64,000 nt of DNA from Lepidodermella squamata (Eukaryota; Animalia; Gastrotricha): assembly GCA_047495785.1 (NCBI GenBank), contig JBLDXI010000017.1, positions 3,286,001 to 3,350,000 of the forward strand, read 5' to 3'. Position 1 is the stretch's first letter; each line of letters begins with the position of its first letter. The notes under the pieces were generated by a model that was not told the DNA's origin, made no database searches, and was given only the letters and a program-made list of their open reading frames with translations. Both the position numbers and the translations under genes were made by a program. Below are positions 5,615-55,441 of this stretch, piece by piece.

Positions 5615-7021
<1,407 letters not shown>

Positions 7022-33321: not shown

Positions 33322-36300
33322 ATGGCAAATTGTTACGTTGCGACTGCCCAAAGAGGAACTGCAGTCAGTTTTTGTTTGACTGGAAGTCTTATCAGGCCAT
33401 CTGATCTTAATCTCCTCGTTGCGAAAAACAATCACTTGGAGATATATTCATTGTGTCCAGAAGGTCTTCGACTGTTGAATGACGTTGCAATCTATGGCAA
33501 AATATGTTGCGTCAAGCTTTTTAAATCTCCAGTTCATGATGGTAAAGACTGGATTTTTATTGTAACTGCCAAGTATCATGCAATGATTTTGGAGTGCGAA
33601 ATCACTGAAGGTGATAAATTTGAAATCGTCACAAAGGCATACGGTAATGTCAGTGAAAGAGTTGGCCGTCCGAGAGAAGATGGGATATTGTGCACAATTG
33701 ACCCTACATGTCGTAATATTGGTCTGCAAATCTACGATGGCTACTTCAAGCTTTTGCCTATTGATAAAGAAAACAAGGAACTGAAAGCATTCAACATGCG
33801 TATCGAAGAAATGTAAGTTGAGCTGTTCGATTTTGACTTGAAATTGAGTTGAATATTATCCAGGCAAACTCAATCCATTGAATTTTTACATGGACGCAAA
33901 ATGCCAACTATTGCAGTCCTTTACAGCGATCGAACTAATGCGCGTCACGTAAAAACTCACACAATTAGCGTGAAAGACCGTGAATTTCTTGGTGGACCCT
34001 GGTTTCATGATAATGTGGATTCACAGGCTAATTTTCTTATCGCTGTTCCTGAACCTTTTTGCGGTGCCGTCATAGTTGGATCTGAATCCTTGCTTTACGT
34101 TAACGGCGATTCACAGCTCTGCGTTGCCCCTGCGCTGATGCGGGGCGCTGTAGTTCAATGCTATTGCATGGTTGACTCAACGCGATATTTGCTCAGTGAC
34201 AGCTTTGGAAGACTGTTCATGCTGTTCCTTGTCAAAAATGAAAACACGATTACCGATCTCAAAGTTGAACTCCTGGGTCTAACCAACATTGCCGAATCAT
34301 TGACTTATTTGGATAACGGCGTCGTTTACGTCGGAAGGTACTTCATGAGTGATTTTGATACATCTGTTCCACATTTTTATTTTGTTTAGTCGGTTCGGTG
34401 ACTCACAATTAGTTCGGCTGTCTGTCGAAGCTGACTCTACTGGATCTTATATTCAGATTTTGGACAACTACACAAATATAGGTCCAGTGTTGGATATGTG
34501 CGTTATGGATGTCGATAAGCAAGGTCAAATGCAATTAGTGACTTGCTCGGGAGCTTTCTCCAACGGTAGCCTTCGTATCATTCGCAGCGGAGTTGGAATC
34601 CACGAGCATGCAAGCATTGATTTGCCGGGTACCAAGGCTGCCTGGGCGATTTCATGGAAACCGGACGGCATGGCAATGGTTGAAGAAGCGGACATGAACA
34701 ATGTCGTTGTGCTGTCATTCATCGGACAAACCAGATTCTTACTTCTGGCCGGAGAGAACGATCCTGAGGAAATTGAAGTCCCTGGTTTGACCAGCACGGA
34801 ACAAACTCTCTATTGCGGCAACGTTGCGAATAATCAAGTTGTCCAGGTAACAGCCAGTGGGATTTTCCTTCTCGGCCAGTCCTCTTCTGGCGCTGCTGTA
34901 AAATGGAGCCCACCTGCAGGCAGGCAAATCGGCGTTTGCTCATGTAATGGCCATCAAATTGTTTGTGCATCCGGTTCCCATCTTTACTATTTGGAGATCG
35001 GCCAGGGAAGCTTATCTTGCGTCGCGGAGGGCAATCTGGATTGCGAAGTGGCTTGTATTGACATTGGCCTAAAAGACGCTAGCGTGAGTTGAGAGTTTAG
35101 TTGCATTCGATTTATTACCTGAATTTGTTATTCTAAGACCAATCGAGCCTCATTTTGCGTCGTCGGTTTGTGGAAAGAAATCAGCATTCGTATGCTCAGT
35201 CTTCCTGCTTTTGACTTGATGCACAAAGAACTACTCGGGACGGAAATTATTCCGAGATCTGTTTTGCTGGTCAACTTCGATAACATTTGCTACCTGCTAG
35301 TCTCAATGGGTGACGGTACCCTGTTTTATTTCCATTTCACAAACGGCAATGCAGCTCCTATCACGGACAGAAAGAAGCTTATTTTGGGTACCCAACCCAT
35401 GACACTTCGTGCTTTCAGCTACCAGGGGGTTCAGAATGTATTCGCGATTTCCGATCGCGCTACAGTCATTTATAGTCGCAATCAAAAGTTGGTTCTTTCA
35501 AGTGTGAACATGAAAAATGGTAAGCTCGATCCTGAAAAGCAACTTCGACTATATTTTTTTTTATATTTTCGAAGTGGTCAGCGTATGCTCTCTGAACTCG
35601 GCCGCTTATCCAGACAGCGTGGTTATTGCCACGTCGACCGGAATCACCTTTGGATCAATTTTGGATATACAGAGACTGCATGTTCAGACCGTTCCTCTGC
35701 GCGAAGCTCCCCGCCGAGTGGCCTATGACGACTCGACCAGCACAATTGCAGTCGTAACCACTCGTTTAGAATACCCTGGAATAGCTTTACCTCCTGCTGC
35801 CTCGACAATCGCTCCATCGCAGTCAGGGAACAAGACAAACGGAGGTATAGCGGCGCTTTCGGGAGGATCTGATGCCGACAATGCGGCTGCGTCGTCAGGA
35901 TCGGCTATTTGCTCGTCCGGCGTAGCTGCCGATTCGACGTCGCTCGAGGAGTGCGAAGTTCATTCATTGCTCATTTTCGACGCTCTTACTTTCGAATTGC
36001 TCCACGCGCGTCATTTCGCTCCGAACGAATTCATCTGCAGCGTCGCATCAGTTCGCTTTGAATCAGAACCTACCACTCCGTATTACGTAGTGGGAGTCGC
36101 GAACATCCTGCCCGGCGAGATGGAACCGAAAAGCGGACGCCTCGTGGTTTTCTCCTGGGCGCATGGAAATTTGGTTCAGGTCGCGGAAAAAGATCTGAAG
36201 GGCGCTGCATATCAAGTCCTGCCATTCAATGGCCGTCTTCTCGCGACTGTAAACTCTTCAGTCATGTTATTCAGTTGGACCCAGAACAAAGAGTTACAGC

Positions 36301-37100
36301 AAGACTGTGCTTACTACAACTGCATTCAAGCCCTGTACGCTAAAACATTCGGCGACTACATCTTGGTCGGCGATTTGATGCATTCGATGATTCTGCTGAC
36401 GTACAAACCAGTCGAAGGCCAGCTCGAGGAGGTTTCCCGCGATCTCAGCCCGGCCTGGATGACCGCGATCGAATTTCTGGACGAGGAAAAGTTCATCGGC
36501 GGCGAGAACGGGTGTAACTTGTTTGTCTGCTCGAAGGGTAATTCCACCGACACCGCGCTTGGCGGCGGTGCCGCGCCGTCGAGCGGCAACAACACCGGGG
36601 GTAACAACGGGGGAGCTGGTTCAACGGATGACGAACATAAGCCGATGGTTCACATCGGACGCGTCCACCTTGCTGACTTCGTCAACGTGATGCAGCGTGG
36701 CTGGCTTGGGATCCAGCACGTGGTCGACGCTATTGCCGTCCGGGTTCAGACCCCGATTCTCTTCGGCACCGTTTCTGGCTGCATCGGGGTGGTTATTCCG
36801 CTGCCGACTGACCTTTTCGATTTGCTGAAGAAGGTAGAGCTGCGGATGGGTGGTGTGGTGAAGGGCGTTGGACGCATTCCCCACGAAGATTTCCGAGCTT
36901 TTCACAACGAGCGACAGACAACAACGTCTAGCGGCTTTGTCGACGGCGATCTTCTTGAGCTGTTCGTCGACCTACCCCTCGACAAGCAGCAAGAGGTCGT
37001 TGCCGGCCTCAGCATGGACGCTGACGGATCGGGCATGAAGCGCGAGTGTTCTGTCGAAGAGGTTGCGAAGCTGCTCGAGGAACTTAGTCATTTACATTGA
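33322..37100 (+). CDS. DDB1: DNA damage-binding protein 1 (CUL4 adaptor), 5 exons
   Basis: [74 protein letters not shown], ending EELSHLH. Confidence 0.97.
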
Positions 37101-51787: not shown

Positions 51788-52559
51788 TACCCTCGATTTC
51801 AATAAAGATTTAAAGAATTAATAAAGAATTAATTTACTAATTTAATACAAAGTTTTGTTTAACCACAATTTACAACAAATTATTGCATGCTTGATTAATT
51901 TTGTTTTGGTGTTCTGAAAAACGAATGAAAAATCGCCTATAATATTATGGTTTTTCATTTCTTATTGTTTGAATGCTCTCTTTCGATGACGACGTGAACA
52001 TAGCAATGGAGCAATGTTGCGCCTTGTACCTGGTACCTGGTTGCTTAATGTGTGCCTCCCGAATTCCCGGTTCTCAGGCGTCCCTTGTTCTCAGTGAAAG
52101 TGTGAAAATCATCAATCACATTGCCATGCGAGCGGTTTCAACCCCCGGTAAACGGAAGTCGTTTCTGATCTAGTAGAGGGGGTGGAGAGGCAGTAACTAC
52201 ATGCGCGTTTATCTGAACTCTCAAACCGCTACCAGGCGCGCGCCACGCCCTTACCATGCTTTCATTTTTATTTCAAACCCTGCTGCTTTATATTCTCGAA
52301 TTGATCCATGGCAACTATTCTGACCGAAGAAGCCGATCACTTGGGTGAAAGGATGAATTCTTATATCCAATCTTCAATCGCCCAACGATTGTTTAGGCAT
52401 CGACTTGAAGACTAGAACACGAGTTACTTCGGTGGCGTATTGTTGCCTTGTGGCCGATCCTATCCGATACGACGGTGTTTACTTATTTCATGTGAATACA
52501 TGTTATATGTCTACTATTTAAATTTAGATTTATTAAATCAAGATTGAAATCAGTGTTGG

Positions 52560-54271
52560 ATGACCGCTTTTTTACCTCCGAATCTCTTGGCACTTTTTGC
52601 GGCTCGGGAGCCAGTACCGTATCTTCCTCCTACAGACAAGCTAAGTCATGAAAAGAAGCGGTTGCCGTACTCAGGTCTTGCCGAGTATCTCTCGAAGTTT
52701 GAGGTCGAAGTAAAAGACGAACCAACCGTCGTAAAAACCGAAACCCGTGATGAGAAACGAGAGCGAAAGCGAAGAGAACGACTTGAGCGCGCAGCTTATA
52801 AACTCGAACAAAGTCTTGCTTCTTGTAAGATATTTATCTGCATTTTATTTGTGATTGAATCATTCTGATTTATTCGTCTAGGGGATCCTCATGCCGTAAA
52901 AGGAACAAGTGATCCATACAAAACTCTGTTTATTGCTCGTTTGGTAAAAACGACATTAATATCATTCATATTCTTTGCTTACACGATGTTCTAATTCCTA
53001 CAGAGTTACGATACCACCGAGTCAAAACTGCGTAGGGAGTTCGAGGAGTTTGGCCCGATCAAAAAAGTCTTTCTTATTAAGGACACCGAGACCGAAAAGT
53101 CTCGGGGTTACGCCTTCATCGAATTCGAGCATGAAAGGGACATGCACGGTAAGTCGACTTGATTATTCGCGTTTCCAGTGATCTTAGTTAACCTGATTTT
53201 TTCAACGATCAATGGTAACATTTTCCCCCCTAGTAGCCAACTTGTCTGTTATCAGTATCCGCTGACAGTTGTTGCTTTTTTGTATTACAGCCGCTCCTCT
53301 GCTGAGCACGAGCGAGACTTTGTGATCCAAAACACTATCTAAATTCCAAAAGAATGTCATTCTTTTGTATTCTTCTTGATTTGGTAAGACCCTGGTAAGA
53401 AAGCGTTATGCGCATGTGTTCTGATAATGTGAATTTGATTAGACGCTAACAACAAGAGATAACAGTTAGGACACTTGTCAAAATTCGTAGAGTTGCTCTC
53501 ACGTTTTTGGTAGTTAACAATGGGGGTAGTTGTTAACGGTGCTTTTATTTTTGATCTCACATCGAATCGACGCCATGTCCCAAGCGTAAGTCATGTAATT
53601 TTTAAACGTAATTCCGGATTTCAGCCGCTTACAAACATGCGGACGGGCGTAAAATCGACGGGCGCCGGGTTGTAGTCGACTACGAACGCGGCCGCACCGT
53701 AAAAGGTTGGCGGCCGCGGAGGCTTGGTGGGGGCCTCGGTGGCGAGAAGCGACGAGCGAAAACGGCCGAAGATGTCGACGGCAGCCGAGATAGGCCTCGT
53801 AGCCGCGAACGAGAGCCCGAGCGAGATCGCGACCGGCGAGGAGACAAGGATCGCGATAGGGATCGTGACCGCCGTGATCGCGGTTAGTTTTCGTGTTTCC
53901 TCTTCAAGAATTTCCAACTCACCATCTCCCTTAATTTGTTTCTAGATCGCGACAGGCGCCGTTCTAGATCTCGTGACCGAGAACGCTCGCGCTCACGTGA
54001 TCGCAAGCGTGAGAAGAAGGACGACAAGGACAGGAAGAAGGATAAGAAGGAGCGAGATCGCAGCAGAGACCGCGACCGCGGGCGGTCAGATCGGCCAAAG
54101 AACAACGAGGACGGAGTGGACGGGCGCCGGCGTCGCAAGAGCTCGGGCAGCGAGCATGAGCCAGGTGAATACATTTCCAGTAGCAAGGTTCGAGCGTCTT
54201 TCGACTCGGATGGCGAGTCTAATCCGGCCAACGGTCAGCGACATTATGACGGCTCGTCGCAGGGTTTCTGA
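52560..54271 (+). CDS. SNRNP70: U1 small nuclear ribonucleoprotein 70 kDa (5 exons)
   Basis: [46 protein letters not shown]|[44 protein letters not shown]-rich tail. Confidence 0.97.
53291..53394 (+). other. Putative poison (PTC-containing) alternative exon in SNRNP70 intron 53149-53624
   Basis: Acceptor TTTTTTGTATTACAG| at 53290, in-frame TGA at 53323-53325, tandem donors TG|GTAAGA at 53384 and 53395. Confidence 0.7.
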
Positions 54272-54457
54272 TAGCTTTGTCTTTTTGCTCTGATTGTGCG
54301 TTAATAGCTCCAATATATATCGCTAATATTAATTATAATTCGTATACAAGTTGCTCGGTCTTGTAAATAAAGTTTTTTCTGAGACTATGAGCGTGTTTTT
54401 GCGTTAGTCTGACCTGAAAAGCTGGTACTGATGATTTTGCAGTCATTCTACAAGAAA

Positions 54458-55441
54458 ATGCGAGAAAAGCTGAATTCCCAGGGATCGTCACGGAATGCTA
54501 GACAAGGTACAAGTGCATAAATTGAACCACTCGGCAGTTTTGCTAACAAATTAAACAACCAACTATACTAACAAATTAAACAAATTAACAAATTCATCGG
54601 CAAGCCACAAATGAAAGAGGAAATAGTAGCTCCTTTGGTACTTGATCTTGAAAGCGCCTCACTTCCTTTGTTCCTCGACTCGACAGTCGATGGCAAAATT
54701 CTAACATGGCATCATGAGGAGGGCAAAGATCTGGGCGAAGGCGTTATTTACAAAGCGAAGATGTCAGGACTTGTTTATTGGAAATTGGAAGCAACTCTCA
54801 GCAATACACCTACAGAAATCTATAGCTTTTTGGCAAATTCATGCGACGATTCATGGGTTCCACATGTTAGCAAGTCAGATATAATTCTGAAGTCCGAAGA
54901 TTGGAGCATTGTACATCAAGTTGCCAAAGGACCACTGGCATTCGCTGATCGAGAGCTCATCCTTATAAGGAAAACAGGCCAGATCGAGCGTAAAGGCACA
55001 CGCTATTTTTACCAGGTATGGAGCTCAGTAGCCGATGAATTTTTACCGAAAATAAGTTCGGGCGCAATAAGGTATCTGAAATAAATTGCTTTCCATTTGC
55101 TCGATTTTTAATTATAATTTTTAGAGCAAATGCATACCCCAGTGGCATTTTTCTCAAGGCTAATAGCAACGCTACCGAATGCTCGATGGTTTACATTCAT
55201 TGTGTCGATCTGCAGGTAAATCATATGCGCTTAGAATAAGTTCTTTCATTTCTATTAAATCGTCTCCTCATCTCAGGGTGATCTTCCGAAATGGGCTGTG
55301 AATCTATCGTCAACAATATTCCTCCGAGACTTTCTGAAGGCCTTGCGCAATCAAATTAAAAACACACGCAGGATCGGTAATCAAAAAATTGAAAAGACAC
55401 CCAATGTTCTATCCGGCTTTAATATGTTGCCGAGGTATTGA
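54458..55441 (+). CDS. START-domain lipid-transfer protein (start 54458, or 54611 if the first small exons are not used)
   Basis: SWVPHVSKSDII, AKGPLAFADRELI, WSSVADE..P..SGAIRANAYPSGIFL, VDLQGDLPKWAVNL match the START fold. Confidence 0.8.

Follow-up and report, generated by a model that had tools for sequence, protein, structure and literature searches.

A candidate U1-sensing poison cassette in the long intron of the U1-70K gene of Lepidodermella squamata

We analyzed a window of 64,000 nucleotides (nt) from the genome of the gastrotrich Lepidodermella squamata (assembly GCA_047495785.1, contig JBLDXI010000017.1). It carries the gene for U1-70K, a protein that belongs to U1 small nuclear ribonucleoprotein (snRNP) particles and the orthologue of vertebrate SNRNP70. 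Intron 3 of this gene contains an internal acceptor, a premature stop codon and two tandem donors of the U1 type. We hold with good confidence that it is the orthologue of the vertebrate SNRNP70 poison cassette, "exon 7a", which forms part of a negative feedback that senses U1. This judgement comes from the intron position, the layout and the motif, which recur in a fish, in named invertebrates and in environmental loci. From these comparisons, the cassette appears to be common to deuterostomes, ecdysozoans and at least one spiralian. The cassette of the window appears to be a derived member, with two consensus donors and without the exact composite motif described below.

The U1-70K gene and the anatomy of its third intron

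The coding region of U1-70K lies at 52560..54273 on the plus strand, as do all the features of the window given below. We established it by splice-site reading, translation, Pfam domains and homologues. Five exons (52560-52824, 52882-52943, 53004-53148, 53625-53882 and 53946-54273) join into a product of 351 amino acids (aa). Pfam detects PF12220 (U1snRNP70_N, 1.2e-25) and RRM_1 (5.9e-16) in this product, and its best homologues are U1-70K proteins. The identity of the gene, as proposed in an earlier note on this DNA, is thus confirmed. In the database searches the exons were queried individually, and the joined translation was used in local tblastn against two loci. The protein of exon 1 is nearest to those of molluscs (Haliotis asinina, 69%). 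With three exons taken together, the nearest is Trichuris muris. The gene is single copy in the 121-Mb assembly.

Intron 3 (53149..53624) is the sole long intron of the gene. The four introns measure 57, 60, 476 and 63 nt, so the difference in length pointed out in the earlier note stands. Intron 3 is in phase 1 and splits the RRM after ...ERDMH. It begins with GT at 53149 and ends with AG at 53623-24. Within it, an internal acceptor AG lies at 53289-90. The alternative exon, from 53291, and the productive exon, from 53625, both begin with CCGCT. The predicted poison exon (53291..53394) can end at either of two donors, with a length of 93 nt (53291-53383) or 104 nt (53291-53394). The 93-nt form is in frame and contains stops. 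By translation, the premature stop is an in-frame TGA at 53323..53325, codon 12 of the cassette. At the sequence level, the intron therefore holds a candidate internal 3' splice site whose use would introduce a premature stop. The tract of this acceptor has 14 pyrimidines in 20 positions, 13 of them U. The tract of the productive acceptor has 11 of 20 and is the weakest in the gene.

The twin donors read G/GTAAGA, where the slash marks the splice point. They occupy 53383..53400; their GT dinucleotides, at 53384 and 53395, are spaced by 11 nt. At least two U1-type 5' splice sites are thus present within about 125 nt downstream of the internal acceptor. The U1 snRNA of this genome has the usual 5' end, ACUUACCUG. 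Compared with the U1-complementary consensus, the twin donors agree in 6/11 and 8/11 positions and the constitutive donors of the gene in 6-7/11, so that the fit of the twin donors is equal or better. Re-reading and a script returned all the coordinates of the earlier note: the internal acceptor at 53290 followed by CCGCT, the TGA at 53323, the donors at 53384 and 53395, and a further GTAAGT at 53586.

This last GTAAGT (53586..53591) lies 39 nt upstream of the productive acceptor. It is too near to splice to it; possibly, U1 binds there and interferes with the branch-point region. Donor-like motifs before the productive acceptor also occur elsewhere. They are GGTAAT at about 37 nt in the metagenome scaffold L009, described below (about position 5932), and GGTAAG at about 20 nt in the environmental loci L071/L076. 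Upstream of the internal acceptor, the donor-like motif AATGGTAA at 53211..53218 is conserved in alignment A1. Its counterparts in L009 are GATGGTAA and AATGGTAA, at 5651 and 5664, 13 nt apart. A splice from GT 53214 to AG 53290 would remove an intron of 77 nt, near the usual intron size of this genome.

The earlier note had allowed that the intron interior might be a repeat. It is not: the interior is single copy in the 121-Mb assembly. No Rfam family matched positions 52400-54500 on either strand at E<=1, which counts against an intron-hosted small RNA (small nucleolar RNA, microRNA or other Rfam family). The longest open reading frame overlapping intron 3, on either strand, has 67 aa, and we regard the intron interior as non-coding. 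Elsewhere in the window, an open reading frame of 527 aa at 35517-37100 matched no database entry at E<=1e-20 among 8000 scored candidates.

Conservation of the cassette in other animals

The sole close relative found is an ENA metagenome scaffold with the same gene (L009), reached via exon 1. The exon 1 proteins of the window and L009 are 64% identical. At four-fold degenerate sites of the flanking exons, 12/50 are identical. Synonymous sites are therefore saturated, and a large distance separates the two animals. L009 likewise has a single long intron, of 389 nt, at the position of intron 3. A block at 53273..53326, which spans the U-rich tract, the internal acceptor and 36 nt at the start of the poison exon, is identical to L009 5719-5772 in 49/54 positions. 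L009 preserves the stop TGA, shifted by one codon downstream, and also twin GGTAAGA donors with a spacing of 10 nt, compared with 11 nt in the window. The earlier note had put forward conservation of the intron across related species as a check, and in this one relative the cassette is conserved. Within the cassette, synonymous positions of its "codons" show the same degree of conservation as the other positions. The cassette is under strong purifying selection at the nucleotide level in the window's lineage. In first-order Markov simulations, a GTAAG pair at most 20 nt apart arose in 1.0% of the cases for the window intron and in 0.5% for the L009 intron. An exact-pattern scan of metagenomes for the conserved block gave 0 matches.

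Previous work described the vertebrate switch (Rösel-Hillgärtner et al. 2013, PMC3798272). In intron 7 of human SNRNP70, an alternative 3' splice site leads to exon 7a, with a premature termination codon. Its use requires U1 snRNP with U1C on the downstream cryptic 5' splice sites A, B and C. Cycloheximide is needed to detect the product, and the switch is functional in human, mouse and zebrafish. The earlier note had reported this precedent accurately, including the role of U1C, the cryptic sites and the nonsense-mediated decay (NMD).

A fish genomic locus (L095, NCBI assembly GCA_004120215.1) allows a direct comparison. Its cassette occupies the same phase-1 intron, between ...ERDMH and SAYKHAD. 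The internal acceptor is at nt 732 of the intron and gives the reading SAYL-stop. The donors are TTG/GTATGA, TGG/GTTTGT and TGG/GTAAGA. Judged by eye only, this cluster corresponds to the reverse complements of two human morpholinos (sites A/B and B/C) in PMC3798272.

To obtain further loci, we scanned metagenome contigs, guided by the peptide of exon 4, and looked up named proteins. A common layout is present in nine other lineages. It consists of an internal acceptor, a stop-bearing or frame-shifting exon of 44-121 nt, and clustered U1-type donors. The intron lies after ...ERDMH in the fish, nematode, mollusc, chelicerate and environmental animal loci alike. In Trichuris suis (L096), the intron has 2420 nt and the donors are tag/GTTTGT and tag/GTAAGG. 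The intron of the scallop Ylistrum balloti (L097) has 4185 nt, and its cassette reads YR-stop. In the horseshoe crab Limulus polyphemus (L098), the intron reaches 12745 nt, and the cassette reads SALADGPKFYHS-stop and has three donors. The environmental contigs L016, L024, L081 and L082 show the same layout in introns of 821-3443 nt. The Lottia locus (L012) covers the first exons only. Between phyla, the cassette peptides are unrelated and have 2-30 aa (SAYL, YR, SALADGPKFYHS). This points to selection on the RNA signal and not on the protein.

The donor clusters also share a motif. A composite of GTTTGTAT followed after 0 to 30 nt by GGTAAG is present in 9/10 independent introns (32 kb) and matches the vertebrate sites B and C. 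The motif GTTTGTAT...GGTAAG also occurs in L071/L076, L063, L074 and L086/L087, and in at least five environmental animal lineages overall. Elsewhere in 859 kb of sequence, on both strands, the composite appeared only in further copies of the same intron. The earlier note had left the choice between a deeply conserved and a convergent circuit. The same intron, layout and motif in fish, Trichuris, Ylistrum, Limulus and environmental lineages favour the first.

In the window, TTTGTAT at 53364..53370 lies 14 nt upstream of the first donor. It is possibly a remnant of the GTTTGTAT "site B" element, with uncertain homology. In an alternative MAFFT alignment, the first donor, and not TTTGTAT, is aligned with the GTTTGT site, so that two alignments are possible.

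An RNA hairpin is predicted at 53284..53326, with the same fold in the window and L009. The outer stem has 7 bp and holds the acceptor AG and the stop codon. The inner stem, of 9 bp, includes two C bulges and ends in a 3-nt loop. In both sequences, each of the 16 pairs is preserved. They differ at five positions. Two of these (53287/53323) pair with each other and show a compensatory change from A-U to G-C, and the other three fall in loops. With two sequences and one compensatory change, we offer the hairpin as a hypothesis. If conserved as predicted, it may gate the access to the internal acceptor.

We also considered a mimic of U1 stem-loop I, that is, a direct site for the U1-70K RRM. The stem-loop I loop of the U1 snRNA in this genome is AUCAAGAAG. 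The block contains GCACGAGCG, which agrees with it in about 5/9 positions. However, GCACGAGCG is predicted to be helical and not in a loop, and we rejected the mimic. In human U1 the loop is AUCACGAAG, unlike that of this genome. At least 42 U1 snRNA genes are above the Rfam cut-off, on contigs C7, C16, C17, C10 and others (L099-L101). Many of them are clustered on C7 and C16.

The start of the poison exon resembles the next constitutive exon in some loci. In the fish, CCGCCTAT compares with CTGCCTAC, and Limulus has CTGCC...GCTGATGG. Together with the shared CCGCT start in the window, this resemblance is a hint that partial duplication of the next exon gave rise to the cassette. In local alignments of the cassette with the next exon, the score was reached by 7/500 shuffles in the window, 15/500 in Limulus and 56/500 in the fish. 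The other loci did no better than shuffles, and the overall shuffle support for a partial exon duplication was weak.

Two more observations concern the intron position. An environmental U1-70K locus (L011, 1140-2235) lacks a GT after ...DMH, an AG before HADGKK and the SAYK codons. Its gap of about 1.1 kb contains AGGTTTGTAT and a GTAAGT/GGTAAGT pair 12 nt apart. This junction could result from a misassembly, an inversion or non-canonical splicing. Plant and green-lineage U1-70K loci (L025, L032, L035, L036, L064 and others; ...HTRDMK / AAYKQADG) have the same phase-1 intron, with about 65-240 nt. The intron position thus predates animals, and only in animals did we see the long form with the cassette.

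Proposed mechanism and competing explanations

From the anatomy and the homology with vertebrates, we propose that splicing employs these sites, that NMD acts on the product, and that levels of U1 or U1-70K decide the choice; the hairpin may take part in it. When functional U1 snRNP is plentiful, it would bind the GGTAAGA donors at 53384 and 53395. Donor-bound U1 would define an exon across 93-104 nt and activate the strong internal acceptor at 53290. The included exon of 93 or 104 nt, with its stop at 53323, would lead to NMD, or to a truncated protein with a broken RRM. Conversely, when U1-70K is scarce, the cassette would be skipped, the weak productive acceptor at 53624 would be used, and full-length protein would result. 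The outcome would be a negative feedback on a protein of the U1 snRNP. A wider proposal is more speculative, and we lean somewhat against it. It is that a pan-bilaterian U1 snRNP homeostat with a GTTTGTAT...GGTAAG cluster was rebuilt in this lineage, its control perhaps shifted from the recognition of weak sites to a structure-gated exon definition. In this rebuilding, two consensus donors would have taken over from the weak U1C-dependent sites, and the hairpin would bury both acceptor and stop codon.

Several observations weigh against orthology with exon 7a or against parts of this mechanism. The exact GTTTGTAT...GGTAAG is absent from the window and L009; the window has TTTGTAT (53364) and two GGTAAGA. 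Both window donors are consensus-like, whereas the U1C dependence in vertebrates is carried by the weak sites A and B. Taken together, the consensus-like donors and the absent composite mean that the sensing logic may differ from that of vertebrates. In Trichuris, the 78-nt form of the cassette lacks a stop in frame, and a frame shift comes only from the 88-nt form. For the hairpin, 236/500 shuffles reached a compensatory change, so this comparison has no statistical power. Its minimum free energy z-scores, from -1.2 to -1.65, are not significant. We looked for a structure common to the cassettes of other phyla and saw none.

The strongest competitor is a regulated retention, or detention, of the whole intron 3. 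In it, U1 at the internal donors and at the site near the productive acceptor would stall splicing. The transcripts would remain nuclear or carry a stop (GKST-stop on read-through). Several data agree with it. Transcript-like contigs of other animals have none of the upstream introns and keep only this one: L013 (Logan), L014 (JGI) and L016/L018/L019 (JGI, three samples). Many database proteins run from ...DMH directly into GTAAGT or GTGAGT. The productive acceptor is the weakest of the gene, and a donor-like motif stands 20-40 nt before it in the window, L009 and L071/L076. In mouse, non-productive Snrnp70 RNAs are partly retained in the nucleus (PMC5062968). Nevertheless, the most conserved part of the intron is the internal acceptor with its U-rich tract, and pure retention does not need it. 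Moreover, the vertebrate data show that the acceptor is truly used (PMC3798272). We therefore consider retention unlikely as the whole explanation. Detention is a real alternative or a companion output, and it does not exclude cassette inclusion. As for the donor-like motifs of these contigs, L014 packs three GGTAAAT into about 20 nt, and in L013 the start of the intron carries two TGTAAGTAT at a distance of 18 nt.

A functional truncated protein is far less probable. It would have 168 aa, with the N-terminal domain and half of the RRM, and would escape decay. Its PF12220 domain, at the N-terminus, would stay intact, and the window and L009 have similar cassette peptides (AAPLLRTSEKLR in L009). 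But the equal conservation of synonymous positions, the unrelated peptides of 2-30 aa in other phyla, and a vertebrate isoform that is visible only under NMD block all speak against it.

Equally improbable, and already disfavoured, are chance splice-like motifs in a long intron, or a role as a conserved DNA-level enhancer or as host of a small RNA, with no link to splicing control: the donor pairing arises by chance in about 1% of cases, the conservation is far above neutral, no Rfam match was found, across phyla, this architecture and its motif return only in this one intron, and the conserved items are strand-specific splice signals which, with the G-U pairs of the hairpin, fit a sense RNA only.

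The poison cassette related to exon 7a thus remains our preferred reading. The mechanism is already known in vertebrates. Our literature search did not find a description of the cassette outside vertebrates, which is no proof that none exists. To judge from this absence, its extension to invertebrates appears undescribed.

U1 snRNP sets the choice of 5' splice sites and protects transcripts from premature polyadenylation. The control of its dosage is therefore basic biology. If the cassette works as in vertebrates, the loop would be among the oldest alternative-splicing events recognisable in intronic sequence. In this animal, it would have survived where every other intron of the gene shrank to about 60 nt. 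An intron of 476 nt with all the elements would be a naturally minimised version, and a handy minigene for the activation of an upstream acceptor by tandem U1 sites. The Limulus, Trichuris and Ylistrum loci make the claim testable with public RNA-seq.

Comparison with known systems

The closest system is the vertebrate exon 7a. Both cassettes are in the same gene and in the same phase-1 intron after ...ERDMH. Both have a stop-introducing internal acceptor, a U1-type donor cluster 44-121 nt downstream and a GGTAAGA donor of the "site C" type. In both, the cassette is better conserved than the rest of the intron. However, the intron has 476 nt here and several kb in vertebrates. The vertebrate cluster combines two weak sites (GTATGA/GTATAA and GTTTGT) with one strong site, whereas here there are two identical consensus donors. 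The window also lacks the exact GTTTGTAT, and its acceptor is placed within the predicted, lineage-specific hairpin.

A second system is the U11 snRNP-binding splicing enhancer (USSE). In it, the binding of U11 to tandem U12-type 5' splice sites switches on a 3' splice site that lies upstream. As in our proposal, tandem 5' splice sites serve as a sensor of the snRNP, and the upstream acceptor leads to a non-productive mRNA of a protein of the same snRNP. In contrast, the USSE belongs to the minor spliceosome and has U12-type motifs, and the sites here are of the U1/U2 type, with GTAAGA fitting ACUUACCUG. Judged by the U12 consensus, the tandem G/GTAAGA sites are not U12-type. Thus the cassette probably works like a USSE, and yet it is not a member of that family. 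The discussion of PMC3798272 likens exon 7a to the USSE of U11-48K and U11/U12-65K.

The cassette also resembles the poison exons of SR proteins and other splicing factors, which couple alternative splicing to NMD. They share a stop-bearing cassette and a high nucleotide conservation. SR-type poison exons are usually sensed through binding sites for the encoded protein itself. Here, unlike them, the candidate sensor consists of 5' splice-site mimics for the whole snRNP.

Finally, the main text of Ding et al. 2026 (PMC13100119), which does not mention SNRNP70, describes an ultraconserved pseudo-5' splice site in ENOX1/Enox. It is an intronic U1 motif, conserved from invertebrates to vertebrates, that tunes a neighbouring exon. 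Among alternative splicing events that have an intronic motif, that text ranks it as the most widely conserved. The two systems share an intronic U1-binding 5' splice-site motif conserved across invertebrates and vertebrates. However, the ENOX1 site, as described there, is never spliced and silences an essential exon, whereas the U1-70K sites are predicted to be usable donors that define a poison exon.

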